64,000 bases of DNA from Blastocladiella emersonii ATCC 22665 (GCA_025594325.1 JANHCV010000002.1:1426001-1490000), one strand, 5' to 3'; positions 9,136 to 48,994 are shown, numbered from the stretch's first letter. A program made the numbers and translations. The notes: generated by a model from the letters alone, not told the origin.

Positions 9136-10800
9136 ATGCAACTCGACCATCTGAGCAGCGGCTACAAATTGCCCGCGTCTGAGGTCACAACCTACAAGGT
9201 CGCCTCCGTCGCCAACCTCGCACTTGCCCTGATATGTCTCCTCCGGTCGCTGTTCGAGGGGTACCAGGAGCTGGGACCGCGGCTCGCCGCCGCCATCGAG
9301 GAGGCCCGCGGCGCGGATGAGCCCGTCGCTACAAGCCAGCCGCTCGAGTCGGACACGCTGCCCAGACGGACGCTCACCCGCAAGCTGTCCATTGCCGTTC
9401 GCGGCCAGCACCACCCGAGCCGCCGGACCAGCGATCTGGGTTCGACGGCGGGCTCGTCGAGCCGGCGGCGCAACTCATCGTTCCTCCGCACCATCCGCAT
9501 CCTGTTAACCGCCTTCCACTTCACCGACATTCGCTGGACTCTGATGGCCGTCCTGAGCGCCATGACCACGGCGCAAGCGGCCGTGGATGTGCACCACGCG
9601 CACCTGAGCCCGACGTTCCCGTTTGTCCACATGTACCCGGAACACGCCATGGTGACGTGGGTCAATTATTGTATCACGGGCTCTCTCGGCAGCTTCATTG
9701 CGCTCACGCGCGTCAGTGTCGTGTGTCTCAAACGCACGCGCGTTAGGCGCCTCATGTGGCCGATCACGCTCGCGTGCGCCGCCGTGCTGATCCCGCTCAA
9801 CCTCGTCTTCGGGCTCGAGAGCGTCCTCGAGACGCAGAACAACGACACGTGGGCCGAGTACGTGGTTCCGACGTGGCTCACTGAGATCAACATCATCCAG
9901 TTCGCGACCATCATCTTCTTCACCTCGTACAGCTACTGGTCCGCCTTCGCCAAGACGACGCCGGCGCCATCGTCGCAGGTCACGTCGTCGCGCCGCGCGC
10001 TCTTCTCGACCTCGTCGGTCGCTCTCGACCAGCAGCCGTCGACAGCGTCGGCCTCGTTCGCGACGATCCTCCGGCCGTGGCGCGCGACGTCCCTCGCCGC
10101 GTCCGTCTGGCGGCCGGGGACCATCTGGCGCGGCAAGCAGGAGGCCAAGGCCATGTCGCTCCCGCCGACACCGGTCTCGACGACGCCGGCCGCGCTGCGC
10201 CTCAACTCGAACTCGCCCAACTCGGGCGCGCCCATGTCGCCGCTCTCGTCCTCGCCGCGCGAAGCGTACGCACTCTCGCCCGCCATGGATCCTGGGCTAT
10301 CGCCGCCCGCGCCCGTACCCAGCCCCGGCCCGGACAGCGGCGACGCGGTGACCGTCGGCGTGGGCAGCACCGTGAGCGACGCGACGTCCGCCTCTTCGTC
10401 CTCGCCCGTGCGCGCGGCGACTCCCGCCGCAACCCCCGCCGCCGCCCCACTCTCGCCCGCGCGCCGGTCCAAGCTGCTCATCTCGGTACGCCGGATCTAC
10501 GGCCTGCTCGCGCTCTCGTACACGGTCGGGTGGATCGGGACCGTCGCGCTGCTGCTTTTCCCAAAGACGATGGGTTCGCCGGCGACACGGTCGCCGTTCT
10601 TTGGGCTGCTGTGCTGCGGCGCCATCTTCCTCGAGTCCCAATTTCGGACTATCGTGCGCGCTCAAGCACGACTCACGCGGGCGCCCGCGCGGCAGGCCGA
10701 CACGCACTTCGACGACGCGACGTGGCGCACGCGCGCCGAGTCCGGGTCGTCGTCGAGGAACACGCTCGGCGCGACGACGGGGACGGCGGGCAAGGGATGA
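9136..10800 (+). CDS. Seven-transmembrane receptor-like protein, paralog 3
   Basis: Same architecture as 4359-5963 (YKVASVANL, ALTRVSVVCLKRT, RPWRATSLA..WRPGTIWRG, RSPFFG.LC..AIFLESQFRTIVRAQ). Confidence 0.65.
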   Translation: MQLDHLSSGYKLPASEVTTYKVASVANLALALICLLRSLFEGYQELGPRLAAAIEEARGADEPVATSQPLESDTLPRRTLTRKLSIAVRGQHHPSRRTSDLGSTAGSSSRRRNSSFLRTIRILLTAFHFTDIRWTLMAVLSAMTTAQAAVDVHHAHLSPTFPFVHMYPEHAMVTWVNYCITGSLGSFIALTRVSVVCLKRTRVRRLMWPITLACAAVLIPLNLVFGLESVLETQNNDTWAEYVVPTWLTEINIIQFATIIFFTSYSYWSAFAKTTPAPSSQVTSSRRALFSTSSVALDQQPSTASASFATILRPWRATSLAASVWRPGTIWRGKQEAKAMSLPPTPVSTTPAALRLNSNSPNSGAPMSPLSSSPREAYALSPAMDPGLSPPAPVPSPGPDSGDAVTVGVGSTVSDATSASSSSPVRAATPAATPAAAPLSPARRSKLLISVRRIYGLLALSYTVGWIGTVALLLFPKTMGSPATRSPFFGLLCCGAIFLESQFRTIVRAQARLTRAPARQADTHFDDATWRTRAESGSSSRNTLGATTGTAGKG

Positions 10801-10866
10801 ATGTTTTGTGATTGGTGATGAGTGGATATGGGAATGTACACGTTGATGGTGACGAACAATGGTTGG

Positions 10867-13800
10867 TTAGAAGTTTTCCTTGGCAAACTCGAAGAACGTG
10901 GTCGTGGCCGCGTTGGTCGCGCGGACGACGTGGCCGAGCTCCTTGCCGAGCGCCTTGAGCCCACAAAAGTAGACGCCGACCTTCTTCCCCGGGTACAGCG
11001 CGGCCGTCTGGGCAAAGATGGACGCCCAGTGCGGGCGGCCCCACGTCACGGCCGAGTTCTGGTGCATGCCCGTGAGGAGGCACCGGCCGCCGGCGCGCCG
11101 CTTGGCGAGCTCGAGCCCCCACCACAGCATGAACGACGCGAGCTCGTCGCCGCCCTTGGCGCACGTCAGGAACGTGTGGACGCGCAGGACCCGCAGGACC
11201 GCCGGGTCGACGCTGCGCAGCGCCTCGCTCATCCACTTGAACCCGTCCTGGTCGCGGTTCAGCCAGTAGAAGTCGATGCGCTTGAGCGGCTTCGGGTCCG
11301 CGACCACCGACGACGCGCGCGAGCTCGCGACGCCGCTGCCGGGTGCGCCCGCGAACACGGTCGTGCGCCGCCGCCGCGCCTGGCTCGCGCGCACCATGTG
11401 CTGCACCTCCTGCAGGATCGACAGGAACGGCGTGCACCCGACGCCCGTGGCGATGAACATGACGTGGTCGTGCTCGAAAAAGGACTGCGACGGCGCGCCG
11501 AAGATGCCGTCGATGCGGACCTCGAGGACCGGCCGCGGCGGCGCGACCGACGCTGTGGCGCTGCCGGTGACGGGGTACGGGCCGGTCGTCGAGTTGACCA
11601 TGGTGTCGTCGGCGCCCTCGACCATGGACCCGAGCGACAGGTAGCTCTTCATGAAGTTGAGGCTGGTCGGCGTCATGCCGACATCGATCGACGTGTGGTG
11701 CCGCACCGAGTCCATGGATGCGTTGCGCGCGAGATCGGTCGCACCCGGGGCTGGCTGTGGCGCTGCTGCGCCGGTGCCCGTGCGGCTGCCCAGCGACGAC
11801 ATGAGCGAGCCGGCGAACGCGCTCGGGCGCGCCGCGACGGTCGGGTCGGGCCGGCGGGGCCACGAGATGGAGATGCCGTTGTTCGCGTTGGCGGCGGGTA
11901 GTGTTGGGGCCGTTGGCGCCGCGGGGCTCGTCGCCTCGGACTCGGCGACCGAGAGCGACGGGGACCGGTCCGTGTCCATCTCGTCGCCGCAGCTGGCGGT
12001 GCTCGCGCGGGTCGCGTCCTTGTCTCCGGCGCCCGAGACGCCGCCGTTGAGGGCGCGCACCATGGCCGTGAGCTCGATCCCGCCCTTACCGCCGCCCGCT
12101 ACGGCGTCGTCAGCGCCGCCGCTGCCCTCGAGCATCGGCTCAACGGCCTTGAACACGGCGGACGTCCAGTCGCCGGCGCGCTTGATGCGGAGCGTGAGGA
12201 ACGGGTCGGACCCGCACGACGTGAGCGAGAAGGGGTGCCACTCGAGGTTCGAGACCGACGGCACGTTGAGGAAGATGTACTGGCCCGCAACGTACTTGCT
12301 GACGAACGGCGGCTTGTCGAGGACGAGCACGAGCGTATCGGCCTGGACCACGGCCTCGCGCACGCGCACCTTGTACGAGGCGCGGTGCACGCGGAGCAGC
12401 CGCTCGACCGTGTACGCGAACACGGGCACCGAAATGTACTTCCAGGTGCTGGGCGGCGCGAGCAGCGCCGAGGACCCGTGCAGGAGGAGCAGGACGACGC
12501 CGACCGTGAACAGGTGGTGCGTGTACCAGAACCGCTCAAAGTGCGCGCGGCGCGTGGCGCTGCCCGAGGTCGCGGCCATGGCGAGGAACACGACGACGAG
12601 CGCCCACCCGGTCCACCCGGGCACGCTGCGCAGGTGCAGGTCGACGTAGCCGAGGTCCGGCAGCCCGAGCGCCTTGCGCGCGGCCGCGTCGTTGACGAGG
12701 ACCGGGATGGTCTTGACGCAGTGGCACAGTGTGTGGACGAGGCCGGCGACGATGAAGATGACGCCCGTGTACTTGTGCCACACGATGTTCTTGTTAATGG
12801 GCACCCACGCGAGGAACTTGACGTCGCGCAGCGCCGTGAGCAGCGTGCGGCACACGAGCAGGAACAGGAACACGCCCGTCGTGTTGACGATGTTGGCGCA
12901 CCCCTTGGCCACGGGCACCCAGTACCCGAACTTGGCCACGACTACCGGGTTGCTCGCGTACTTGTGGAAGTTGTACGCGAACATGCCGCCGACCACGAGC
13001 GCGAAGAAGGCCACGCACATCCACTTTGGGCCCTCGCTCAGCCACAGCGTGTAAATCCACCGCTGCCACGTCACGGGCGGCACCCCGTCGTCGTCAGCGC
13101 CGCGCGCGACAACCGAGGCCGTGGCCATGGTGGCGCCCGTCGTCGCGCGCATGAGCCCGAGGTCGCGCGGCTTCGGCTGGTCTCCTGGTCCCGGCGCGCC
13201 GGGCCGCGCCGCGTGCGAGTGCGCCTGCAGGTCGTCGACGTCGAACTGGATCCGCGACCCGCGGCGGAGGAGCCAGCCAGCGGCGTCGCGCACCGTCGAC
13301 TTGCGGCGGAGCCCGCGCGCACGTGCCGTGTCGCCGTCGGCCTTGGGGCTCATAAACCCGCCGGCCCCGCCCATGGAGAACCGCGCCGCGGTCGGGGTGA
13401 CGGGGAACGCGAGCCCGAGGTGGTCCTGGTCCGTGATATCGACCTCCTTGTTGACGGTGGTTCGCGTGAGCGGGAGCCCGATCTTGGCGAGGTTCCAGCG
13501 GCGCGTGACGAGGAGAAAGTCGTGGAACGAGACGACGCCGTCCGAGTCGACGTCGAGCTTGTCCATGACGCTGGTCACGAGCAGCTCCATGTCGTCGGGC
13601 CGCAGGTACAGCGCGTTGGCCTTGACGGCGCCGCGCAGCACGTTCTCGACGACGGCGCGCGTCACGTCGCCGTCGCCCGCCGCGTCCAGGATCCGGTACA
13701 GCACCGCGAGCTTCTGCTCGTGCACGAGCGCCGCGTTCACGTCGTCGCCGTCAGCGCCCGCTCCAGAGGCTGCGGGAGCGAGCAGCGAGATGAGCGGCAG

Positions 13801-15442
13801 GAACGTGTCGAGGTCCAGCTCGACGAGGTCCGGGTCGCTCTCGACCGCGTGCACGCCCAGCAGCTCCTGCACGTGCGACGCCTGGTTGCGCAGGCCGGGG
13901 GCGAGCGTCTGCCACTGGTCGCGCGTGATGACTACAGCACCGACGTGCCCCGCCGGCGCGTCGTCTTCGGGATGCACGGGCGACTCGTGGTCGTGGTACG
14001 CATCCGCGCCCTCGATCGACGGCGCGACGCCGTTCGGCGCCTCGATATCGACGGGCACGACCACCGCGTGCTCGACGGGCGTGTCGGCGCGCGACGCGGG
14101 CGTCCCGCCACGGTCGATCGTCGACGCCGCGGTCGTCGTGATAACGAGGTCGGACCCAGCAGCCTCGGGCTTGGTGACCGAGTCGACGAGCTCGCGGAGC
14201 GCCGAGAACCCAGCGCGGTCGAGCGTGCGGGGCTTGTCGCTGTCGGACTCGGACCCCGAGTCGTTCCCGCCGGCGTGGACGTTATCCGCGCTCGCGGTGC
14301 GGCGCAGCGACAGCGACCGGGCGAGCGTCGACGCGATCGACGACGCGGGTTTCGGGACGGGCGGGACGAGCGACGGGTCCGAGTTGCTGCGCTCGATGCG
14401 GTTGAGCGTGGCCATGCGGCGCAGCGTCATGGGGACGGGCGACGGGGTCCCGCCGCTACCAGACTCGCGCTCCTGCTGCTGTTGCTGCTGTTTGGCCTGC
14501 CGCCGCTCGAGCAGCGTCAGCGTGCGCGTGAGGGTCGGCGCGCCGAGCGTCACGGTCGCAGGGCTCGGCGTGCGCACCGACCCGCTCCGGCCGAGCGTCT
14601 GCGCCGTGTGCGAGCGTAGCAGCGGCGGGGCGGGTGGCCGTGGCGCTGCCGCAGGAGCGGGAGCGGGCGCAGCGGCGGTCTCGGCGAGCGGGGCCGTGTC
14701 GTAGCTGGAAGCCGACTCTTCATCTACAGGTACGACGAACCGGGTCAGCGACGGTGTGATGCGAACCGTGATCAGCCAGCGTACCGCTCGACCCCGCGTG
14801 GACGCCTCCGACATCCTCCTCGCGCCCGTGAGACCGACCACGGCGACCGCGCCCCGGGGACACGGCGTCGGCCATATCGACGTCGACCGTGACGCCGCCC
14901 GTGGTGTCGGCGTCCGAGTTGGACTCGGGGTGCGGGTCGACCGACGCGTACGTCGACACCTCGAACCCGTTGGTCATGATGCCCGGGGACGGCAGCGCGC
15001 CGGTGGCGGCGTCGAGGCGCGGGCGGAAGTTGAGCGTCGGCGACAGCGGATCGGGCGGGCCTGCCGCGGGCTCGTCGGCTGACGAGTGCGACAGCGGGTA
15101 CCGCGCCGAGACGGCGGCAAAGACCTCTGTCGTCGGGAAGAAGTCGCCGCCGCCATCGTGGTCGCTGTCACCGTGCTGGTGCCGCGCATCAGCGCCGCCG
15201 TGCCCGTTCATGTCAGCGGCAGCAGCGCTCGTGCGCGCGAAATCGAGCGGCGGGAGCGATGGCGGCTCGGCCGCGACGGGCGGCGAGTCTGCGAAGGTGT
15301 CCTCGGGGATGGACGCCGGGGTACGAGGCAGGGACGGCCGGGTGCCGAACCCAACCGACTGCGTGAGCGACTTGATGGAGAGGGACCGCTTCAGCGAGGA
15401 GGGCGATGATGCGTGGTGGTCGGGCGTCTGCTTGCCCTTCAT
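10867..15442 (-). CDS. EF-hand (calcium-regulated) NADPH oxidase, NOX5/NoxC/RBOH-like, ~1504 aa, 2 exons
   Basis: EF-hand-like loops (LDAAGDGDVT, LDVDSDGVVSFHDF), heme His pairs (WHKYTG..LVHTLCH, FWYTHHLF..LLLH), FAD motif EWHPFSLTS and GDWT, NADPH motifs IDGIFGAP, ATGVGCTPF and VGVYFCG, and C-terminal FEFAKENF. A 61-nt intron at 14784-14724 joins the upstream frame starting MKGKQ. Confidence 0.9.
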
Positions 15443-15792
15443 GGTGCCGGACGGTGCAGGCTCGGAGGGAGAGAAGGGGGAGAGGAGACCGGGTGCGGGC
15501 CGATTCGGGCGGGTCGTCGAAGCAGGGCAGCAGCACGGGGTTGCGACGGGTGCCCGGGTCGAGTCGCTGAGGGAGACGCAGCGGCTGCCTTCTGGCGAGA
15601 ATCGGGAAGGCGGGCGGGGCAGCGGGCGAGGGGAAGCGCGACGGAAGGTGACGCGCGGCGACGCGGCGTGACGAGGTAACAATCAGCGGTGTCTCCCACC
15701 GCGCCCGCCGAACGTGACCGCGGTGCGAGACGCGTCGCTCATGTCATCACCCCACCCCACCCGCTACCCAAAAAATGATTCATACATTTAAT

Positions 15793-17757
15793 CTACAGCA
15801 CAACCGAAACCATCCGCGTCTCAGTGAGCACCGCGAACCCTCCCGCGCGCCCGCCGGCCATGCGGAGCGGCGTAAGCCCAACGATCTCGTCACTGCCGAG
15901 ATCCAGGACGTGCTGCGGCGCGCGGTGGTCGCGTCCGCCGGGCGGCGGCATGTACACGTAGACGTGGCCGCGCGACTCGGCGAGCGCCGTGAACTGTGGC
16001 GTGGCCACCGCGAGCCGCTTGTCGCGCTTGGACGCCTGCACGTAGCTGAACGCGTGCGCGGTTGCCGAATGCACGAGCGCCGGGGGTGCGTCGGTCTCCG
16101 ACTCGGCCGCGTGCGTGTACAGCACGCCGTCGACGTCGCTCTTGAGGCAGATCCCGGCCGGCCACGCGGGGCACAGGAACTGGTGGATGCCCGTCGACAC
16201 GGGCTCGACGGTCGCCGCGGGTCCGGACCCGGACCGCGTGCACCGCGCGAGGTACAGCGTGGCCTCGTCGACCAGCAGGTCGATCTCCTCCTGCCCGTTG
16301 AGGATCGACGCGGGGCCCGGGCCGGGGACCGCGCGGCCCTCGAGCGCGGCGGGCGCCGCGAGGTCGGCCGTGTACTTTTCGAGCTGCTCGCGGAAGCGGG
16401 CCACCTCGGACGGGTCCACCGTCTCGAGGACGGGCGTCCGGGAAACCGACTCGTCGAGGAGACTCGACCACCGCGTGCCGGGGTCGCCCTTCTCGAGGTG
16501 CAGCGTCAGGTGCCGGTTCGCCTCGAGCGTCCACACGCAGTCGTCGGGGTCGACGGTGCCCCACAGCTTGCCGTCGAGGACGACCACGGTGCGGTGCGTC
16601 GTCGCGTCTTCGGCCTTGACGGGCAGGTCATCAACGACCAGGTGCACGCCGGAGCGCGTGAACCGGCACCGGATCTGGCGCTTCTCGACCGGCGCGCCGC
16701 GGAACGAGACGTGCACCGACACGTCCTGCTCCGTCTGCTGCCACACCCACGAGTACTGGTCGCACGCGAACACGGTCGACGGCGGCTCGTTCCCCACAAC
16801 ATCCGTGTCCATGGCCTGCGATGGAACGGGCGTGTCCTCGAACAGGTCGCCCGACCCGGACCGCACCGGCGCATTGGACGCGACCCACGCGTGGTCGGGC
16901 CCCGTGAGCCGCGCGTACAGCGGGTGGCTGAGCGTGGTCCACTGCGGCTCCGCGGTCAGGGGCTCGAGGAGCGCGGGCACGCCGTCGAGCTCCATGACGT
17001 CGCCGAGATCGAGCGAGAAGACGAGCCGGACGCCGTGAAACTGCGACACGGTGCGCGCGCGCTGCTGCGCGGACGAGGACGCGGCAGGCAGCTGTTCCTC
17101 GGACACCCAGTACGCGAGGACGTGTGCCGCCGCCGCCGCGCCGTCGTCGCTTGCGGGGAACACGGCGGCGTCAGCGGCGGCAAGCGGCTGCGGGTGCGTG
17201 TACACGCCGACGACGGACCGCGACACGAGGTGGACCAGGTGCAGCGACCCGACGCCGTCGCTCACCACGACGTGCGTCGTGGGCTGCGCGGGGTCAGAGT
17301 GCCGCACGGGTACGATCGCGGGGACCAGCGCGGTCGCTTGCACGCCCAGCGTCGATAGCGACTGCGTCAGCGGGACGGCGAAGTGGACGGCGCCCTACAC
17401 ATTCGGACAGCGTAAGTCCCGCGGCCAGATCGGTCGATAGCCGCGAGCCGCACGCACCTGCCGGTCAAGAACGACAAGCCGCCAGTTCTGGTCGAGGAAC
17501 GCGAGCTGTCCCTGGCCGAGGTCCGCGAGGTTGTTGAAGGCCATGCGCGCGGACGCCATGGCGAACCCGGGGTTGCTCGCGCCCGCCTGGTGCCGGTCCA
17601 GGAACGCGAAAGTGATGGGCGCCGACGGCGCGGCCGACTCGTGGACCTGGCCCGGCGCGAGCGGCGCGAGCTTGTAGCCCTCAAAGTTGGGGTCGAGCAG
17701 CTCGCGGCGCACGCGCAGGTGCGGCTGCGCGGGCTGGTTCATGGCGCCGAAGGTCAT
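15793..17757 (-). CDS. NUDCD1: NudC domain-containing protein 1 (CS/p23 co-chaperone)
   Basis: N-terminal LRVRRELLDPNFEGYKL and CS domain WQQTEQDVSV...GKLWGTVDPDDCVWTLE...LTLHLEK...WSSLL. One intron near 17453-17393. The start is ATG 17757 or 17742. Confidence 0.85.
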
Positions 17758-37210: not shown

Positions 37211-37310
37211 GCAGGACTATGAGACATGAGGTCGAGAAGGCAGGACTATCAGAATTGAGGTTGAGACGGCCGGACGATCAGTGTTGAGGCCGCGAAGGCA
37301 GGACGATCAC
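37211..37310 (+). repeat. Degenerate 29-bp tandem repeat, ~3.4 copies
   Basis: Units start at 37211, 37240, 37269 and 37298; consensus roughly GCAGGACKATCAG..TTGAGG.CG.GAAG. Confidence 0.8.
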
Positions 37311-38001
37311 AGAGCTAAGTGAGAGCAAGAGTGGTCCACTTCACCTAGTTCATGGTGCGGCACCAAAGAACGCATGGGTGGAACTAGGCGTGATCGTCCT
37401 CGTACGGACGACGCTGGACGCGGAGCGTGCAGCCGCTGGCCAGCAACTCGTGGGTCGAGCCAAGCGGTTGTGGCGCGCGATAATCCTTCTCGACGAGAAG
37501 CAGGTAGGGCGAGCTCAGCGGGTGGAGCAAGCGCTCCGTCGTTGCTGCTGCGGCCCGACTAAGCTTACACGGCTGTCCTGGACTGAGAAACGACCGACCT
37601 TTGAGATGGCGACGGCGAGGCTCCGAGTCCCAGTTAGACAAGTTGCATGAGGTGCCATCTCAAAACCGAGAGTGTAGACGAAGCGCTCATGGAGATCGCG
37701 GAGGAGCGGCCAAGGAGGCGTGGCGCCCAAATCTTGGGGAGGGAATGTGCGACCAGGCCAAAACGCGACGCGACGAAGGTGGCGCAGCGATGCGCTGTGC
37801 TGCGCCACTCACTTTCACAGAGTCACCTGAGATCTGCTGCTTTCGCATTGATCATCATCTCAAGCAGTGCATAGCGAGGGTGCAAAGCAGTCCAAGCAAG
37901 GAAATGGAGTGGGATCGCCTATAAATCCCAGCCGCCCTCCCTGCCTCAGCACTCGCTCCTCATCCTTCGTTCAATTCGACTACCATCGTTTGTAACACAC
38001 C

Positions 38002-38251
38002 ATGTCTGCCCAGATTGCCCTCGCCTCGTCGTCCTCGTCGTCCAAGGTGTTCTCTTCCTCGGCCAAGCTGCCGCTCAATGGCACCAGCATCAGCATGCCC
38101 AAGAGCAAGACCATCAACAACGAGTGCGCCGATTCGACTCCGACCCCCAAGGTCGGCACGCTCAAGGACCGGTTCGAGCAGCTCGTGCCTGCTCCCGGCT
38201 CGCCCACGACTCGTTCGCCCGGCTCGCGGTCCAAGGACCAGGTTCACGTCA
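38002..38251 (+). pseudogene. 5' half of a host gene interrupted by the Helentron
   Basis: TATAAA at 37920 and ATG 38002 (MSAQIALASS...SKDQVHV). The frame runs into the element 5' end at 38252. Confidence 0.7.
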
Positions 38252-38822
38252 TTCTCAGCTGTAGCTTTAGCGAAGCTGAGTTTCTGTGGGAGCAATTGAA
38301 ACCTATCAGGCACATCAACCTTGCTCTTGTGGTCACATGAGTGGCTCAGTGACCGTTTTCGATTTTCGTCGCGCGACGAGTTCCGTTGTTTTTCGCTTTC
38401 ACTTCATTCCGACCCCTGCAACGTAAATCTGGACTGTGCTTTGCCTAGTCCCCAACAGTTCGAGGCTGTTCACTTCGAGGGGAGCGAGGTCCTGTGCAGC
38501 GGTTCCCGTGCGCAGGCGCGACGAGACGGACCTCGCTCGAAACTGACTGTTCAGCATCACGTGACCTGACATCAATCCTGTCTGGCTGCATTTTCGCGCC
38601 CTCGGAAGCTCTCCCACTCCACGCCCGCTCGCTCGCGCTTGCCGCTGCTCGTCGACGCTCTTTGAGACCTCCTGTGCTGACCAGCTCTTTACCCGCCACT
38701 CCTACCCCATGCAGCGCTTAATACTTCGCGATCCGGCGTCTGCCTGGCCGCCATGCGGCCACATATAAAGGCGCGCGGGCCGCCGCTGACAGTCCTTGCT
38801 CTCCTCCACCACTCGCAACACC

Positions 38823-40354
38823 ATGAACTTCTCTCCCACGTTCTCGCTGCGCTGCTCGTCGCGCTTCACGGTTCTCTCCAAGCTTCCGTCTCCGCCGTCA
38901 AGCCCCTTCCTCTTCTTCAACAACGAGATCCCCGTCCGCTACTCGCCTGGTGTTCCCCTCATCAACGCCAACGCCTCAACCGATCCGCTCGGCTTGCTGC
39001 AGGCCACGGCCGTCGCGTACCGCGGCAGCCTGCTCGTCGGCAACTCGTACAAGGCCGACGGCTTCATCAAGATTGACGTGTGCCCGTCCGTGATGGCTCC
39101 AACCTTTGACGCCCCCAAGACGCTCGTGTTCTACCTGATCGCTTCCAGCCTGCTCGGTCAACTCGACCCCGCCATCTGCTACCCCGACCCCGCAATCATC
39201 AGCGGCCTGTTCACCTTTGGTTTGGTCGTCCTCATCGATTTGTTCCCTCACCGCGCTCACACACATCTCCCACTTCTAGGCGGCGGCAAGACGTTCGCCA
39301 TGTGCCAACCCACGCTTGAACTGGCCCAGCCCATGACCGTCATGAACGGCACGTTGCAGTTCCTCAACCCGACGCACCGCGGCCAGCCTGCTCCCCGCGC
39401 AACCACGTGGTCCATGAGCTGTGTGATCCCGACCAACCGGTACGTCCTGATCCGCTGTTCGACTCTTCTGCGAATCTTCTCACTCACGAATCGATGTGCA
39501 GTGTGCATGGCAGTAAGGGCCTGTGGGTGATGGGCAAGACCATGCTCGTCTCTGGCCCGCTGTTCTGTGGCTTCGAGGGTGCGGCTAACAATGACCACTT
39601 CACCATGTCCTTGTCCGTCGCCTTCTTCATCACCGAGATGCGGTCGGTCGCCACTGCGACGGCTCCGCCTCCTTTGCAGGGCCCCAACGGTCCGCCCATG
39701 TTCACGGCCAGTCCCTCGTTGCCCGCCAAGATGGTTCCCGGCGCTGCGGCCGCGCCCGCTGCGCTCGTCCCGCTCATGGCCGCGTGCACCACCCGCTCGC
39801 CAACTTCCACCTCGGCGTCCATCAACGCGCCGTCGGGCGGCACCACGTTGGGCAGCACCACGTCTGGCAGCGCCACGACGCCGTCAGGACCCGCGGCGTC
39901 AGCTGTCGTCCAGGAGCTTGACATCAACCTGCAGGAGTGGGATGACGTCGGCAGCGAGTCCGACATGACCGTGGTTCCCGCGTTGTTGTCCGCCGTGACC
40001 AAGAACAAGAACATCACCAAGATCGTCGTCAACTCGGAGGCTGATGAGGAGGTCGACGCCGACGAGGAGGAGAGCAAGTGCGAGTTGGGCCCGTTGTCAT
40101 TGTCAAGCCGCGCACGCAAGATGGCCACCAAGGCCAAGGGCCGCGACAAGAACAAGACGGTCAAGACCCCGCCAGCCTCGCCCACCAAGCGTACCCGCAC
40201 GTCGGCCGTCAAGGGCAAGTCCGGCGCTGCCGTCCCTGCCGCCCAAGATGACGACGAGGCTGACGACGACGACTCAGCGACCCCGCCGGCCTCGCCAACC
40301 AAGCGCGCGCGTCGCGGTCCCGCCAAGGGCAAGGGCAAGGACCGCTTGGCCTGA
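38823..40354 (+). CDS. Element-borne gene (3 exons): beta-rich N-terminal part, possibly OB-fold ssDNA-binding, plus an acidic/basic disordered tail with NLS-like TPPASPTKR x2
   Basis: TATAAA at ~38764, ATG 38823, and introns 39220-39279 and 39440-39501 give an uninterrupted frame. The fold assignment is inference. Confidence 0.6.
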
Positions 40355-40609
40355 TCCTGATCCTGTTCCTTCCTTCGTTTCTTTCGAAAAATACTTCTGC
40401 TGTCTGATATATTCCAAACTCTTTTTCTTCCAACTGGTTACTACTCGAATTTGTGAGGTGCTCGTTGACTGGCGAGCTCAAAGAGTTTACCCCTGAACTC
40501 TGAGAACGCGTTTCAAAGACGCGTTGCGTGACGCGTCGCGTTGGCGCTCGCGTTCGTGTTCTCACAACTGTGACGCGCGACGCGCAACGCGAAGAGCCCT
40601 CGCTTCTCT

Positions 40610-41450
40610 GTGCTCATGGTCACGCTCAGCGAGGCCGGCACGGGAAAATCTTGGGTCATCAACTCGCTTTCCCAGATGTTCGCAGCACACGGTCGCTCAG
40701 ACATGCTCCTCATTGCGGCTCCGACTGGCGTTGCGGCTTCACCAATCAACGGAGCGACATTGCACTCGACATTCAAGCTCCCAAATCATCCGCCGCTTGA
40801 GTCGATTTCCAGCAAAGTGGCTCACGAGGCCAGGACTCGACTACGGCCTGTCAAGTTTATCCTCATTGATGAAATCAGCATGGTTGGGGCCTCAGTTCTT
40901 TCAATGATTCACACGCGCCTGATTGAGCTTTTCCACGAGAGCCGCGACCTTCCCTTCGCTGGTTGGCATGTCCTTGCATTTGGCGACTTCATGCAGTTCC
41001 CGCCCGTTGGTGCAACGTCACTGTGCACCGCCCAAGAAGTACCACGGGAACCCGAACTTGTCACCAACGAGTTTCTCGGCCTGCACGTCAATGGCGAACA
41101 AGTCCAGAGCGAACCTTCGAAACCTCAAAAGAAAAGGTCTTTGAGCGCGGACGCTCTAAACCAAGCGGTGGACCTTTTGGCGATCGCAGTTCCCCATTGA
41201 GCTGAGCTACGCGATCACAGCGCACAAGGCGCAGGGGATGACCCTGAACAAGGTCATTGCCGACTTCGGCGACCCCAAGCTCCCGCATCGTTTTCCTGCC
41301 TGGTACCCGTACATGGTCCTCTCTCAAGCGCGCAGGACCGAGGACATCCTCATCATCCGGTTCAACAGTCGGGTTCTCGTGCAGAAGGCATTACAGCACG
41401 TGGCGAAGGACATGGAGCGACTGTCCCTGCTGAGCAGGATTGAGAATTGA
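40610..41450 (+). pseudogene. PIF1-family helicase remnant of a RepHel transposase
   Basis: Motifs EAGTGKS, APTGVAA, IDEISMV and GDFMQFPPV, then after an internal deletion/frameshift QFPIELSYAITAHKAQGMTL and YMVLSQAR. The stop lies ~45 nt before the 3' subTIR. No Rep (HUH) domain is seen. Confidence 0.9.
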
Positions 41451-42658
41451 TAAACTACTTCACTTTCACCAACTGAAACAGTCTCAAGAAGCCAAGTAAA
41501 GCTACAGCTGAGACCCAAGTGTGTGCGCAGCACACACACCTAGTAGATTTAATTTGCGGGATGTGGGAGGGGTCGAGACTTAGTGCTCTAATTCGCCATC
41601 CACCCGGTGCTTGGCGGCGGACACGTCACGCCCTTGCAGCTCCCTTGCGTTGCAGCCCGTCAAACCCAAACCCCTTGCGATCGCGGCTCTAGATCAAATT
41701 CCCCACACTTGTAAGATAACGGCCATACGTTGCAGCTTTTGTCCACATCAGCTTGGTCGAGGTCAACGGTTTCCGCGCTTGAAGGAGCAGCGCACACAGG
41801 TCGCGTCCGATTCTCAGCTATGGGCCTTACGTCCGTCTCACTAGTAATACGGGTGGGATGACCGAGCCGCCAGGACGAGTGAAAACGGGTGCAAGGATGG
41901 GGGAGAGAAGTCGTACTCGTACTGCTCGAGCCTAAAGAAGTAAGCCGCCCGGCCTGCCTGGGCCATGGATGGACGACGCGATGCGCCACTTGCGTGATAT
42001 GGCGGTGCCAATGATATCTCCCTGCCCTGTTCTCGCTTTCATGGACACAGTTTTTCTCCACTCGCGCGTCCAAACCGTAGCTGACCAATTCATGTGTGAT
42101 GCGCTCAGAAATTCGGGTACTTTGACCATATACCTGGGCTTCAATCATGCTACTTCGATCGACTCACTCTCGCGCCGGTAGCCATGTGAAAATCGCCGCG
42201 TCGTTCAAGCAGCGTCGACGCCCTGGGCTGCGCCACCCCGTGGCTGAGCCACCGCCACTCGGTCGCGTCCCCATTTTCCTTTTCGACGCCTCGAACCCGC
42301 GTTCCCTCCCGCTTGCATTCCGCTTTCCACTTTCCGAATCTGCCGTTGACAGCGGCCAGTGCACCGGATTGCGGCCGAATCCGCAGCGGCCGCTAACCGC
42401 AGCCGCAGCTTTCCGCTGGAACTGCGGCGCACTGCGGCGCCGCCCCCGCGTCTGTGAACCACACGCCGTGGCGCTTCGCCGCTACGTCCACGTTCCGGTG
42501 CGGAGCGCTCCGTTACCATGTGCAACGTCTCATCGGCATGCAGCTCCGGACCGTATAAGAACGGGCTGCTTCCCCGCCGCCTCAGACCGAGTTGATCATC
42601 AGCTCCTCATCCAGCGTCACCAACACCCACACCAAACCCACACCTCCACGTCTTCAAG

Positions 42659-43492
42659 ATGACCTTCGGCCCGATCTTCGTCCCGTCCTTCCAGTCTCAG
42701 TCGCAGTCGCAGTTCCAGAACCAGTGGGGCGGCAACGGCGCTCAGCAGCAGTCCCAGTCGCAGTCGCAGACCCAGTTTGGCGGCAACGGCTCGCAGTCGC
42801 AGTCCCAGTCGCAGACCCAGTTCGGCAACGGCGGAAATCAGTCCCAGTCGCAGTCGCAGTCGCAGTTCCAGGGCCACAACTCGGTCGATCCCGCACAGCA
42901 GAACCAGTCGCAGTCGCAGACCCAGTTCGGCAACGGCGGTACCCAGTCGCAGTCGCAGTGGCAGTCGCAGAACAGCGGCAATGGCGCGCAGAACCAGTCG
43001 CAGTCGCAGACCCAGTTTGGTGACCATGGCGCTCAGTCGCAGTCGCAGTGGCAGGGCCAGTGGGGCGGCAACGGTGCCCAGAACCAGTCCCAGTCGCAGT
43101 CGCAGTTCGGCGACGGCGGTGCTCAGTCGCAGTGGCAGGGGCAGTGGGGCGGGAACAACTCGGGCGACGCGGCGCAGCAGCAGTCGCAGTCGCAGACCCA
43201 GTTTGGCGATCACGGCGCGCAGTCGCAGGCCCAGTCGCAGTGGCAGCAGAACCACGGCGGCGACGCGTTCCAGGCCCAGAACCAGTGGCAGCAGCAGGGC
43301 CAGTGGGGCAACCACAGCTCGACCGACGACGGCGGCTCGCTCATCGTTGGCGGCGATCCGGCGACCTGGGGTCCGTCGCCCATGGACGGCGGCGGCAACG
43401 GCGACTTCCACCACCTCCTCCCGACCCCGCACCACGGCGACGTCGGCGGCGACGTCATGACGCTCCTCCCCGTCCACCACAACCTCATGTGA
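42659..43492 (+). CDS. Q/S/G-rich repeat protein (prion/amyloid-like), no signal peptide
   Basis: TATAAG at 42554. About 13 units of ~15 aa of the type QSQSQTQFG(N/D)xG and QSQWQGQWGGNG, followed by a short non-repeat His-rich tail. Confidence 0.8.
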   Translation: MTFGPIFVPSFQSQSQSQFQNQWGGNGAQQQSQSQSQTQFGGNGSQSQSQSQTQFGNGGNQSQSQSQSQFQGHNSVDPAQQNQSQSQTQFGNGGTQSQSQWQSQNSGNGAQNQSQSQTQFGDHGAQSQSQWQGQWGGNGAQNQSQSQSQFGDGGAQSQWQGQWGGNNSGDAAQQQSQSQTQFGDHGAQSQAQSQWQQNHGGDAFQAQNQWQQQGQWGNHSSTDDGGSLIVGGDPATWGPSPMDGGGNGDFHHLLPTPHHGDVGGDVMTLLPVHHNLM

Positions 43493-44059
43493 GGGCGGCG
43501 TTGCGTTCGCCAACTCGCCACCCTCAAGCACATTCCCCAAGGTCTTGGACGCTCCGAACGCGAGGATCGACCGTGTAAATACTTTGTCATGTTACCCAGC
43601 AATCAATATCACATCTTTCGTTTTGTCAGTTTCATGGTGTCGTGGAGGATGGGGAGAGCGAGGACGCGCTGCGGCGCCTCGACGCGCTTTGAGCTGCGCT
43701 TCTCCGCCACTCGTTGACCGACCCGTCTACGACTTCCTGGATTTTGACGATGACACCTCATGCAACTTGCTTATCCATGACGCATAAACCCGTCATCGTT
43801 GTTGCACGGACCGTTTCAGTGCCTCGGCGCGAGTCGGGCCACGACAGCGACGCGACGCACTCGATCCGCTTGCGTCAGTCGAGGACCGTTTCGCCGACTC
43901 TTGAGGAACTCCGGCTCATACCCGATAGTCCTGTCTTCGGCCTATGGACTCGCCATCGACGAACTCGGGCGCCCCTGGATGGCAGCTGGACGCGGGCTCG
44001 TCGCCTATGAGCTCGTAGCACTCTGCACGGCGCTCGATGTGATCCAGGAGGAGCGATCC

Positions 44060-44529
44060 AGGGGGACTTTGTCGTCAATGAGCGTACGAGAGCCGCGCGT
44101 CAGCATGAACATGCACTTGCAGCGCACTTGGACGTGGCCCGCGATGAGAACGGACAGGCTCTCGCGAACAATGACAACGGCCTTCTCCATGAGGTCGGCC
44201 GTGAAGGCGAGCGCGTCATCGACGAGTCCAACGCTGATGATGCCCGAGTCGGCGCTAAGGGTGACTGCCGAGGTGCACAGGCCGTACAACGTGGCCGTGA
44301 TCCTGGCGGTCGCGATCAGCGTCCGGAACGAAACGATGAGAATCAGGCCGAGGAACAGCAGCCCGAAACTGGAGAATCCTCGACTACGGCTATCACGACC
44401 GTCGCGATCATCACCATGATGCCGAACGAGTTGGCCACGTACGCGAGTAAAATGAGGTTCTGGATCGCCGTCAGCAAACACGTACTGACGACCAGCCGTG
44501 TCGATCTCCCATTTGAGCCAAGTTGCTGA
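44060..44529 (+). pseudogene. Unassigned coding-like remnant
   Basis: Open frame with host-like codon usage, but no clear start or recognizable domain. Confidence 0.25.
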
Positions 44530-44670
44530 GTCCGATCCAGATCGACGAAGTGATGATGTTGGGAACACACGAAAGAAATCAAATTTTCGAACAAGAGAAA
44601 CACAAACAAACGGTACTCTATGAGAGAATAGGCAAGGATGAGGGGTATCACGAAAGCAAAACACGGAAAC

Positions 44671-45374
44671 TCAGAAACCATCAACGGCGGCCACGGCGGA
44701 CTGCAGGACAACGGGCGCTGAGGAACTGGGGAGAACCTTGACGCCAAAATTGGTCGAGCACGGCTCGGAAGTCGCAGCAGACACCTTGACGGTACTGGAT
44801 GCACCGCCCAGTAGGTTGCTGAACTGAGCCTTGATTGACAACCAACGGGAGCTCGAAGCCGACTCGACCAGCGTCTGATCTGACCCGAACTCGGCCGGGA
44901 GCTTGACGAGTTTTGAGTCAATGGCTATGGACTTGGCCACCGCCGCCACCTTTGCCTCGGGGTTCACCGCGGCCGCCGACGCACTGCCACGGTGGCCGGC
45001 ACGGCGGCGAACTCAGCGCAAAACTTTGCCAGCGGTGCTGCGCTTCTTCTCGGCCTTGGCGGGAGCGGTGGGGGCGTGAGTCGCAGCCGTCAACCCAAAA
45101 GTGGTGGAGAACTCAGTTGACACGGTGCCCGCGGAGTCGGGGCACGTTGAGGTCTCCTTGGTCTTGATCAGCGCCGTAGCAGCGGCCTGGGTAGTCGGGA
45201 CGGCGGCAGGTGTAACAGCAGTCACGGCGGCGGGCTCAAAGGCAGCGCGCAGGGTCAAAACATGCACCCCGGCGAGCGCATTGAGCACCGCCGCCGCCGT
45301 CACAGCGCACGCCGGAACCGACTTGGTCTTGTTGTCGCCCTGCGCGAGCTGGTTCTTGTCGTTGCCAAAGTGGA
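44671..45374 (-). pseudogene. 3' half of the host gene whose 5' half is at 38002-38251
   Basis: A38251 joined to minus-strand 45374 onward reads ATC CAC TTT GGC AAC... = (QVHV)IHFGNDKNQLAQ..., in frame and open to 45013. A further frameshifted segment continues to 44671. Confidence 0.65.
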
Positions 45375-47998
45375 CTAGGTGTGTGTGCTGCGCACACACT
45401 TGGGTCTCAGCTGTAGCTTTACTTGGCTTCTTGAGACTGTTTCAGTTGGTGAAAGTGAAGTAGTTTATCAATTCTCAATCCTGCTCAGCAGGGACAGTCG
45501 CTCCATGTCCTTCGCCACGTGCTGTAATGCCTTCTGCACAAGAACCCAACTGTTGAACCAGATGATGAGGATGTCCTTGGTCCTGCGCGCTTGAGAGAGG
45601 ACCATGTACGGGTACTGGGCAGGAAAACGATGCGGGAGCTTGGGGTCGCCAAAGTCAGCAATGACCTTGTTCAGGGTCATCGTTGTGAGAACACGAACGC
45701 AAGCGCCAACGTGACGCGTCACGCAACGCGTCTTTGAAACGCGTTCTCAGAGTTCAGGGGTAAACTCTTTGAGCTCGCCAGTCAACGAGCACCTCACAAA
45801 TTCGAGTAGTAACCAGTTGGAAGAAAAAGAGTTTGGAATATATCAGACAGCAGAAGTATTTTTCGAAAGAAACGAAGGAAGGAACAGGATCAGGATCAGG
45901 CCAAGCGGTCCTTGCCCTTGCCCTTGGCGGGACCGCGACGCGCGCGCTTGGTTGGCGAGGCCGGCGGGGTCGCTGAGTCGTCGTCGTCAGCCTCGTCGTC
46001 ATCTTGGGCGGCAGGGACGGCAGCGCCGGACTTGCCCTTGACGGCCGACGTGCGGGTACGCTTGGTGGGCGAGGCTGGCGGGGTCTTGACCGTCTTGTTC
46101 TTGTCGCGGCCCTTGGCCTTGGTGGCCATCTTGCGTGCGCGGCTTGACAATGACAACGGGCCCAACTCGCACTTGCTCTCCTCCTCGTCGGCGTCGACCT
46201 CCTCATCAGCCTCCGAGTTGACGACGATCTTGGTGATGTTCTTGTTCTTGGTCACGGCGGACAACAACGCGGGAACCACGGTCATGTCGGACTCGCTGCC
46301 GACGTCATCCCACTCCTGCAGGTTGATGTCAAGCTCCTGGACGACAGCTGACGCCGCGGGTCCTGACGGCGTCGTGGCGCTGCCAGACGTGGTGCTGCCC
46401 AACGTGGTGCCGCCCGACGGCGCGTTGATGGACGCCGAGGTGGAAGTTGGCGAGCGGGTGGTGCACGCGGCCATGAGCGGGACGAGCGCAGCGGGCGCGG
46501 CCGCAGCGCCGGGAACCATCTTGGCGGGCAACGAGGGACTGGCCGTGAACATGGGCGGACCGTTGGGGCCCTGCAAAGGAGGCGGAGCCGTCGCAGTGGC
46601 GACCGACCGCATCTCGGTGATGAAGAAGGCGACGGACAAGGACATGGTGAAGTGGTCATTGTTAGCCGCACCCTCGAAGCCACAGAACAGCGGGCCAGAG
46701 ACGAGCATGGTCTTGCCCATCACCCACAGGCCCTTACTGCCATGCACACTGCACATCGATTCGTGAGTGAGAAGATTCGCAGAAGAGTCGAACAGCGGAT
46801 CAGGACGTACCGGTTGGTCGGGATCACACAGCTCATGGACCACGTGGTTGCGCGGGGAGCAGGCTGGCCGCGGTGCGTCGGGTTGAGGAACTGCGACGTG
46901 CCGTTCATGACGGTCATGGGCTGGGCCAGTTCAAGCGTGGGTTGGCACATGGCGAACGTCTTGCCGCCGCCTAGAAGTGGGAGATGTGTGTGAGCGCGGT
47001 GAGGGAACAAATCGATGAGGACGACCAAACCAAAGGTGAACAGGCCGCTGATGATTGCGGGGTCGGGGTAGCAGATGGCGGGGTCGAGTTGACCGAGCAG
47101 GCTGGAAGCGATCAGGTAGAACACGAGCGTCTTGGGGGCGTCAAAGGTTGGAGCCATCACGGACGGGCACACGTCAATCTTGATGAAGCCGTCGGCCTTG
47201 TACGAGTTGCCGACGAGCAGGCTGCCGCGGTACGCGACGGCCGTGGCCTGCAGCAAGCCGAGCGGATCGGTTGAGGCGTTGGCGTTGATGAGGGGAACAC
47301 CAGGCGAGTAGCGGACGGGGATCTCGTTGTTGAAGAAGAGGAAGGGGCTTGACGGCGGAGACGGAAGCTTGGAGAGAACCGTGAAGCGCGACGAGCAGCG
47401 CAGCGAGAACGTGGGAGAGAAGTTCATGGTGTTGCGAGTGGTGGAGGAGAGCAAGGACTGTCAGCGGCGGCCCGCGCGCCTTTATATGTGGCCGCATGGC
47501 GGCCAGGCAGACGCCGGATCGCGAAGTATTAAGCGCTGCATGGGGTAGGAGTGGCGGGTAAAGAGCTGGTCAGCACAGGAGGTCTCAAAGAGCGTCGACG
47601 AGCAGCGGCAAGCGCGAGCGAGCGGGCGTGGAGTGGGAGAGCTTCCGAGGGCGCGAAAATGCAGCCAGACAGGATTGATGTCAGGTCACGTGATGCTGAA
47701 CAGTCAGTTTCGAGCGAGGTCCGTCTCGTCGCGCCTGCGCACGGGAACCGCTGCACAGGACCTCGCTCCCCTCGAAGTGAACAGCCTCGAACTGTTGGGG
47801 ACTAGGCAAAGCACAGTCCAGATTTACGTTGCAGGGGTCGGAATGAAGTGAAAGCGAAAAACAACGGAACTCGTCGCGCGACGAAAATCGAAAACGGTCA
47901 CTGAGCCACTCATGTGACCACAAGAGCAAGGTTGATGTGCCTGATAGGTTTCAATTGCTCCCACAGAAACTCAGCTTCGCTAAAGCTACAGCTGAGAA
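45375..47998 (-). mobile_element. Helentron-type element, copy R (2624 bp), inverted relative to copy L
   Basis: Reverse complement of copy L with the same termini (CTAG 45375-45378, TTCTCAG at 47998). It lacks 668 bp (L 40569-41236) that carry most of the PIF1 remnant. Confidence 0.87.
45896..47427 (-). CDS. Second copy of the element-borne gene
   Basis: Mirror of 38823-40354. The translations are identical except one L/S change. Confidence 0.6.
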
Positions 47999-48994
47999 AT
48001 AATCGCGGGAACACCACTAAAATTGCTCATTCGACATATCCGAGTCGCATATACAATTTCAGCCGGGTCGGTTATGTGACTCGATTCAAGAAGCTAAGTC
48101 TGAGGGGCCGATTTCGTCCGAACGACCAAAACCGAAAGTTTTTTTCAACTTTGCACGGTCGGACAACTTCTCGGCACCCCGACACTCCGACTCGGAGACT
48201 TTTGTATATTCGGGGTCCCTGAAGCTCTCTGATCACGACCCTATGCTCAGAAAAAATTTTCGGGTGTACTTTGAATTTAGACAGCTAAGTCGTGTCACGT
48301 GGGATGATGTCAGGCTGGCGGAGCTACGCGTCGATCACGTCCGCGTGACCCGAAGCACACGTCGAGCCGAGCCGCTGATCTTCGCTGCTTGGCAGAAACA
48401 CCACACCCGTTCATTGATCATCGCTCTCCGGTTTCTAATTATTCCTTCACCCAGGGCTTGTACTCCAGAAGCGACTGTTGCACACGCCCACGAGAACGGC
48501 ACTCCGCCCCGCTTCTCCTCGTCTACCCGGCCACCGATTCAAAGTCCTATCGATAATGTTGCGGCTCTCGGTCGATACAACTTTGACGATTGTCGGCACG
48601 ATACGCTGGGCGCTCAGCCCGCGGACGAAGTGCCGCACGCTCTGAACAGTAGTTGCTCCGAGTAGGAGGCCTCGAACAACGCACACCGACTGACTCGGTC
48701 ATACGGGAAGCACGTTGTTGAGTTAGTTAGCGCGTTTTTGTGCAGGTTGCAGTCGCGGTCGTGGCTTTTGATGGGACAATGATGCGGAAGTGGCAGATGC
48801 ATTGATGCCTGCGTTAATCCTCGTCGCCGTTTCGCGCCACGGTGGCCTTGAGCTGGTTGACCAACCGGTTGGTTTGAGCTGTCGCTGCGCGTGTCTGGTC
48901 CTCCGTGAAAACGCGAGTAGCCGCGGTACGCAGATCGCATGACGCAGCCTCAGCTTCGCCTGCGTGGCTCGGGGCAAAGTTGAATGCCCGGTGC

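Follow-up and report, generated by a model that had tools for sequence, protein, structure and literature searches.

Recombination between two facing rolling-circle elements as the probable source of a 3.8-kb inversion that separates the halves of a gene in Blastocladiella emersonii

Introduction

In the early-diverging fungus Blastocladiella emersonii, a small gene breaks off at the 5' end of a transposon copy, and a second copy of the same family faces the first from about 3.8 kb away. The sequence that would continue the gene adjoins the second copy, on the opposite strand. This arrangement raises the question of how the two halves of one gene came to lie on different strands, and what part the two transposon copies played in their separation.

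Inversions between bacterial IS copies or between yeast Ty elements are well known. In Drosophila, inversions have arisen from ectopic recombination between inverted copies of the transposon Galileo (PMC2775673). For rolling-circle elements, a study of Helitron2 in Fusarium names ectopic recombination between Helitrons as a source of deletions only (PMC5148889).

The DNA analysed here comes from B. emersonii ATCC 22665 (contig JANHCV010000002.1, assembly GCA_025594325.1), and the window is the whole stretch of 64,000 nucleotides that was examined. This genome was assembled with the La Jolla Assembler from PacBio HiFi reads with a mean length of 10.5 kb, followed by Illumina polishing, and duplicated contigs were taken out by hand (PMC9730499). 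The reported totals of 6.37 Gb of reads and 34.27 Mb of assembled sequence (PMC9730499) correspond to a computed HiFi coverage of about 185x. An earlier reading of the locus, made from the DNA alone and called the sequence-only reading below, had proposed that a host gene was split by an inversion between two transposon copies. We conclude, with a probability of roughly 0.8, that recombination between two facing rolling-circle copies inverted the intervening 3.8 kb and placed the gene halves on opposite strands.

Results

Two facing copies of a Helitron2-type element

The locus is framed by two element copies, designated L and R, whose principal parts are as follows.

38252-41544, plus strand: copy L, a putative non-autonomous Helitron2-type element of 3293 nt including one ambiguous T (repeat search, alignment)
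45374-47998, minus strand: copy R, 2625 nt, a short form of L's family (repeat search, alignment)
38253-38280, plus strand: 5' terminal inverted-repeat arm and hairpin of L; the arm (38253-38269) is TCTCAGCTGTAGCTTTA, with a 7-bp stem involving 38274-38280
40569-41236, plus strand: 668-nt stretch of L that is missing in R, with a PIF1-type helicase remnant (alignment, Pfam)
41497-41544, plus strand: 3' end of L, comprising an arm (41497-41513), a hairpin (41519-41537), ACCTAG and the ambiguous T

The inverted repeat described by the sequence-only reading is real, and a repeat search recovers its arms at 38252-40574 / 45676-47998 and at 41237-41544 / 45374-45681. The element ends proposed there agree with ours to within 1 nt, and the shift reflects one T of ambiguous placement: the 11 copies compared (L, R and nine further loci) all carry the string TTCTCAG...CCTAGT, which is preceded by A, T or G and followed by any base. 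Within the window, CACACCTAGT is found solely at the 3' ends of L and R. Inside the element lies a gene in which a Pfam search detected no domain; it has 16 annotated relatives, every one of them in the B. emersonii genome. In short Logan unitigs from one sample, the 3' end of the element reaches 17-70x single-copy depth, indicating that the family is abundant.

The name Helentron, which had been given to these elements, is not established by their termini. In its strict sense it calls for an autonomous partner that encodes an AP-endonuclease domain in addition to Rep-helicase, and among the copies compared no partner with an endonuclease was seen. Helitron2-type elements are defined by a 5' arm with a hairpin, a complementary subterminal 3' arm and a hairpin near the 3' end (PMC3627910), and four observations bear on whether L and R belong with them. 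First, the element starts with a T, and its 5' arm begins at the second nucleotide (38253), within the 0-2 nt from the end that characterize this type, and carries a predicted stem. Second, all 17 nt of the arm at 41497-41513 are complementary to 38253-38269, and this arm lies directly 5' of the 3' hairpin, which has an 8-bp stem (z -3.5). Third, there is no target-site duplication, as seen at two paralogous empty sites that each hold a single T. Fourth, an ORF in the L-only stretch (40610-41200) encodes a PIF1-type helicase remnant of 196 aa (PF05970, E 2.4e-19); a Rep domain was not found. Helentrons insert into TT, whereas the empty sites here have one T, with A, T or G standing 5' of that T across the 11 copies. 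A canonical Helitron (Helitron1), which has 5'-TC and 3'-CTRR ends and lacks terminal inverted repeats and a 5' hairpin, was also considered and rejected: the terminal CTAG fits CTRR, but inverted arms and a 5' hairpin are present, and the 5' flanking base is A, as in an A-T target, in only 5 of the 11 copies.

Judged by their termini and empty sites, L and R appear to be non-autonomous Helitron2-type elements. The ambiguous terminal T has a counterpart in FoHeli1/2 of Fusarium (PMC5148889). Unlike other elements of the Helitron2 type, L and R end in a hairpin followed by ACCTAG, which resembles the canonical Helitron CTRR, and their target is N-T with a single T.

Insertion leaves a single ambiguous T

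Empty sites of the 11 copies were sought among the fetched loci, and that of copy L004 was found. The repeat surrounding L004 has relatives of 76-80% identity in L003, L009 and L006, each with exactly one T where L004 has the entire TTCTCAG...CCTAGT string. From this single T it follows that insertion adds the element length minus one T, and the rule agrees at two independent sites, namely the L004 site and the join of the split gene described below. An A-T target, as the sequence-only reading had it, is not a rule of the family, the base 5' of the element being A, T or G. Among the loose unitig ends shown for one sample of short Logan unitigs, no empty-site allele was present.

The broken gene and its intact paralogs

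The two pieces of the split gene occupy the following positions.

37737-38251, plus strand: promoter region and N-terminal 83 codons, with the ATG at 38002 (codon usage, paralogs)
44671-45373, minus strand: C-terminal part, reading HFGNDK... from 45372 (frame, paralogs)

Downstream of a TATA box at about 37921, the 83 codons at 38002-38250 have a GC3 of 0.87 and a codon score of +0.35 bits per codon, and the gene start then breaks off within codon 84, after its first base (A 38251). On the minus strand, a frame that begins HFGNDKNQ... at 45372 is open for 119 codons with a GC3 of 0.77 (0.84 in the first 150 nt), and it is the one frame with a positive codon score there, +0.19 (+0.39 in the first 150 nt). 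An in-frame TGA at 45013-45015 occupies the position of a Trp in the paralogs, and the frame afterwards runs on to 44671. Coding DNA adjoins the elements at 38251 and 45373 only; the flanks at 41545 and 47999 are non-coding, with negative codon scores in all six frames. The possibility that L lies in an intron of a gene continuing along the plus strand was rejected, as no plus-strand coding signal precedes the ATG of a Q/S/G-repeat gene that lies beyond it.

The split gene belongs to an S/T/A-rich family that is specific to the lineage. A phmmer search with the 83 N-terminal residues identified as relatives P0018 (327 aa), P0019 (296 aa) and P0021 (333 aa, encoded at two loci), to which P0022 is added as a cluster-mate of P0018; all four are B. 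emersonii proteins. Another match, P0020, proved to be an unrelated protein of low complexity. The paralogs are 296-419 aa long, and five intact ones in the same genome all continue the N-terminal piece straight into the C-terminal piece. P0018, P0019, P0021 and P0022 align to residues 1-83 and span the join as ...DQVHV-x-(Q/H)FG.... Where the paralogs read ...DQVHV-A-QFGDAKNQLAQG..., the window read across the join gives ...DQVHV-I-HFGNDKNQLAQG.... Against residues 85-325 of P0018, the C-terminal piece aligns in a single frame at 75% identity, down to 44671. A protein search with this piece (minus-strand ORF 45016-45399; matches of 70-224 aa) returned as its sole hit the genome's own chimeric gene model, and a Pfam search found nothing in it.

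These paralogs decide several points raised by the sequence-only reading. Its in-frame join, GTC-ATC-CAC with the restored T between the A and the C, was correct, as the paralog proteins cross it. Paralogous counterparts of the uninterrupted ORF exist in the same genome, and they run from the counterpart of 38002-38251 directly into the minus-strand sequence. Its statement that the inversion split the gene holds for the displacement of the halves, but the splitting itself is the work of an insertion.

The simplest alternative is that nothing was inverted, L and R having inserted in their present places beside unrelated gene pieces. An in-frame join has a one-in-three chance of occurring, and GC-rich DNA often contains open frames. 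However, this explanation is already refuted and retains next to no probability: paralog proteins and a collinear paralogous locus cross the join exactly, and there is no coding sequence after L or before R.

A paralogous locus preserves the uninverted order

The segment between the elements contains a second gene.

41545-45373, strand not applicable: inverted segment, 3829 nt (L011 collinearity for 42226-45373)
42659-43492, plus strand: Q/S/G-repeat gene, 277 aa, inside the inverted segment (L011 comparison)

The ancestral order is read from paralogs of about 80% identity within the same genome, above all from L011, the locus of P0018. Positions 9759-10264 of L011 correspond to window 37737-38250 (80%), and positions 10259-13388 correspond, without interruption, to the minus strand of the window from 45381 down to 42226 (81.3% over 3262 nt). 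A second paralog within L011 has the same continuity across the join. At least 42226-45373 is thus inverted relative to the gene start. Over the join, L011 aligns without a gap only when precisely one T is restored after 38251 and ahead of the complement of 45373, and one breakpoint therefore coincides with the element ends to the nucleotide. L011 also has a gene resembling the Q/S/G-repeat gene, which is convergent with its family gene; a Pfam search found nothing in the Q/S/G protein. The remainder of the segment, 41545-42225, is unique and non-coding, with single-copy unitig depth at 41600-42199.

Intact paralogs and the collinear L011 together show, at the level of sequence comparison, that the segment between the two copies runs opposite to its ancestral orientation, which bears out the central claim of the sequence-only reading. 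It might be argued that the orientation is a choice of the assembler, the uninverted order being the real or predominant one, or both orders coexisting through flip-flop. A 2.3-kb inverted repeat of 99.9% identity is a good substrate for recombination, and duplicated contigs were removed manually from this assembly (PMC9730499). Nevertheless, we consider this improbable. Given the read length and coverage, a 2.3-kb repeat lies well inside the reads, which easily span copies of 2.6-3.3 kb, and the 668-nt indel ties the 3' part of each copy to its flank.

The second breakpoint

The other pair of flanks includes the following sequence.

47999-48300, plus strand: non-coding AT-rich flank at the 5' end of R (probable former partner of 41545 onwards)

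By elimination, we infer that 47999 and 41545 were once neighbours, with the partner site CCCGCGATTAT-T-AGATTTAATTTGCGGGA. The homology of L011 stops at 42226, short of this second site. Among the fetched loci, no paralog or ortholog had its empty form (the reverse complement of 47999 onwards, a T, and 41545 onwards). A TCCCGC...GCGGGA palindrome had been claimed at this junction, but it is not significant, as randomly paired flanks yield arms of 6 nt about 10% of the time (p ~0.1).

A nearly identical 5' block in copies of different subfamilies

The feature that bears most directly on mechanism lies within the elements themselves.

45713-47998, minus strand: homogenised block in R, the counterpart of L 38252-40537 (1 difference in ~2286 nt)

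In global alignment, L and R differ by 3 substitutions in the 2316 nt of the 5' block and by 8 in the 308 nt of the 3' block (2.6%), a disparity in density with a Fisher p of 4e-6. These substitutions are CpG transitions nearly throughout. In the 5' 2.3 kb, any two independent copies of the family differ by about 2-5%, and most copies have 9-20 private variants each there (44 and 76 in the degenerate copies L008 and L010). L and R, by comparison, share 17 variants that are absent from the nine other copies, 16 of them transitions, and their difference in the last 308 nt is as large as that between independent copies. In L positions, private variants shared by the two copies extend as far as 2215, the first R-private variant follows at 2287, and heterology sets in at 2317. 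Finally, L002, L003, L004 and L009 carry exactly the internal deletion boundary of R, which places R in a short form that transposed as such.

Comparison of the copies shows that L and R are members of different structural subfamilies, R having an inherited short-form deletion and L a helicase remnant, and that their 5' blocks have been homogenised. The distinct subfamilies and the divergent 3' block suggest that two separate insertions preceded the inversion, and the crossover likely fell within the 5' block (R 45713-47998 / L 38252-40537). Two features are expected of ectopic recombination. Homologous copies in opposite orientation are present at both breakpoints, and an exchange of flanks is evident at the gene site from the paralogs and L011, and is inferred at the second site. 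Since this family makes no target-site duplication, the exchange is read instead from the split gene and the one restored T.

The following course of events is likely. Two non-autonomous Helitron2-type elements would have inserted in separate events, facing opposite ways at a distance of about 3.8 kb. Codon 84 of a small intronless gene would have received one of them, probably the short form, and the AT-rich intergenic DNA upstream of the Q/S/G-repeat gene the other. Homologous recombination in the shared 2.3-kb 5' blocks, with a crossover and gene conversion that stopped at the heterology, would then have inverted all DNA between the crossover points and given the present order, leaving the gene start at the 5' end of L on the plus strand and the remainder at the 3' end of R on the minus strand. 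The nonsense codon of the broken gene may have been gained afterwards or may have been present already. Homogenising the full 2.3 kb in one event requires a long conversion tract; otherwise several events are needed.

A different origin would be through the rolling-circle transposase, either by replicative intramolecular transposition or by cutting at the facing 3' ends and religation of the segment in reverse. In Tn3, Mu and IS elements, intramolecular replicative transposition produces an inversion together with a second, inverted copy, and the end topology is the same as here, with inverted copies around an inverted segment. Each of the four junctions is a genuine element end, and junction sequences by themselves cannot distinguish transposition from homologous recombination, and the near identity of the 5' 2.3 kb of L and R would also suit such an origin. 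Unlike the products of Tn3, Mu or IS transposition, however, L and R are structurally distinct subfamily members, and no target duplication is split between them. Replicative transposition predicts copies that are identical at birth, a prediction at odds with the 668-nt indel, the boundary shared with a subfamily and the 8 differences in 308 nt. The difference in the 3' part would require later conversion of R's 3' part alone, from a third copy. The papers on rolling-circle elements that were consulted contain no precedent for either process, and such elements are not known to undergo replicative intramolecular inversion. We therefore regard a transposase-coupled origin as very improbable. Of the two mechanisms offered by the sequence-only reading, ectopic recombination fits the subfamilies and the homogenised 5' block, and replicative transposition is disfavoured.

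Discussion

Recombination between two facing insertions would make this locus comparable to the Galileo-type inversions of Drosophila. In both cases, opposite-facing copies occupy both breakpoints, the flanks of each copy derive from two original targets, and uninverted sequence reveals the ancestral order. The present case departs from those inversions in its reference, a paralog rather than a sister species, in its host, a zoosporic fungus, and in its element, which is of the rolling-circle kind.

The inversion also accounts for two chimeric models among the publicly annotated genes. In H9P43_002433 (P0012, 510 aa), a predicted splice at 38240/38241 connects the orphan gene start to the gene inside the element. 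H9P43_002435 (P0001, 163 aa) begins in the helicase remnant of R and reaches the orphan C-terminal piece by taking the AG of the terminal CTAG for its acceptor. Unless RNA shows otherwise, both are prediction artefacts of a broken gene.

The event is a familiar kind of rearrangement and involves no new mechanism; what is new is so clean an instance in a rolling-circle family, and in Blastocladiomycota. Paralogs give the ancestral join with single-nucleotide precision, the one-T rule is fixed by two independent sites, and recombination left a visible conversion tract. The locus is suited to measuring ongoing flipping in the existing HiFi reads, and it represents an unusually well-resolved transposon-mediated inversion in an early-diverging fungus.

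The element and neighboring genes

At the split host gene, the public annotation has two chimeric models, H9P43_002433 (510 aa) and H9P43_002435 (163 aa), each of which fuses part of this gene with ORF sequence borne by the element. The gene that the element itself carries has 16 annotated paralogs; its protein exhibits no Pfam domain, and relatives outside B. emersonii were not found.

Features in the window
38002-40354 and 45013-45680: regions of H9P43_002433 and H9P43_002435, respectively
38823-40354 (in copy L) and 45896-47427 (in copy R): element-borne gene, 469 aa, introns predicted
37211-37349: three tandem-like units of ~30 nt each, then a short palindrome and TCACCTAGT

The units, palindrome and TCACCTAGT upstream of the split gene resemble a solo 3' end from a related rolling-circle family. 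This feature has no second copy among the 11 fetched loci, and its predicted fold is no better than those of shuffled sequences.

Within the inverted segment, the region of the Q/S/G-repeat gene (window 42600-43300) exhibits a unitig depth of ~10-40x single-copy and numerous internal repeat joints, and so it is part of a multi-copy repeat-protein family. A Q/S/G-like gene also occurs at the paralogous locus, L011, where positions 9759-16139 form a near-palindrome in which two genes of the split-gene family, P0018 (+) and P0022 (-), face each other with the Q/S/G-like gene between them.

Other copies of the element

Loci with short-form copies
L003 and L009, contig JANHCV010000011.1, ~452-467 kb and 505-519 kb: one short-form element in each
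L004 5130-8352: dispersed repeat around the copy; relatives at L003 562-1151, L009 1981-2570 and L006 10922-11515

The elements of L003 and L009 differ by 1 nt and lie in opposite orientations with ~50 kb between them; on either side, the 300 nt next to one element are identical to those next to the other. The filled element site is thus part of a large inverted segmental duplication. The L004 copy is inserted in another dispersed repeat, which shares 76-80% identity across loci in a coding-like alignment.

Transitions at CpG make up the great majority of differences between element copies, including L (38252-41544), and account for 16 of the 17 variants common to L and R and for nearly every difference between these two. 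Several of the differences reappear in scattered copies, a pattern that suggests decay of the element family through methylation.
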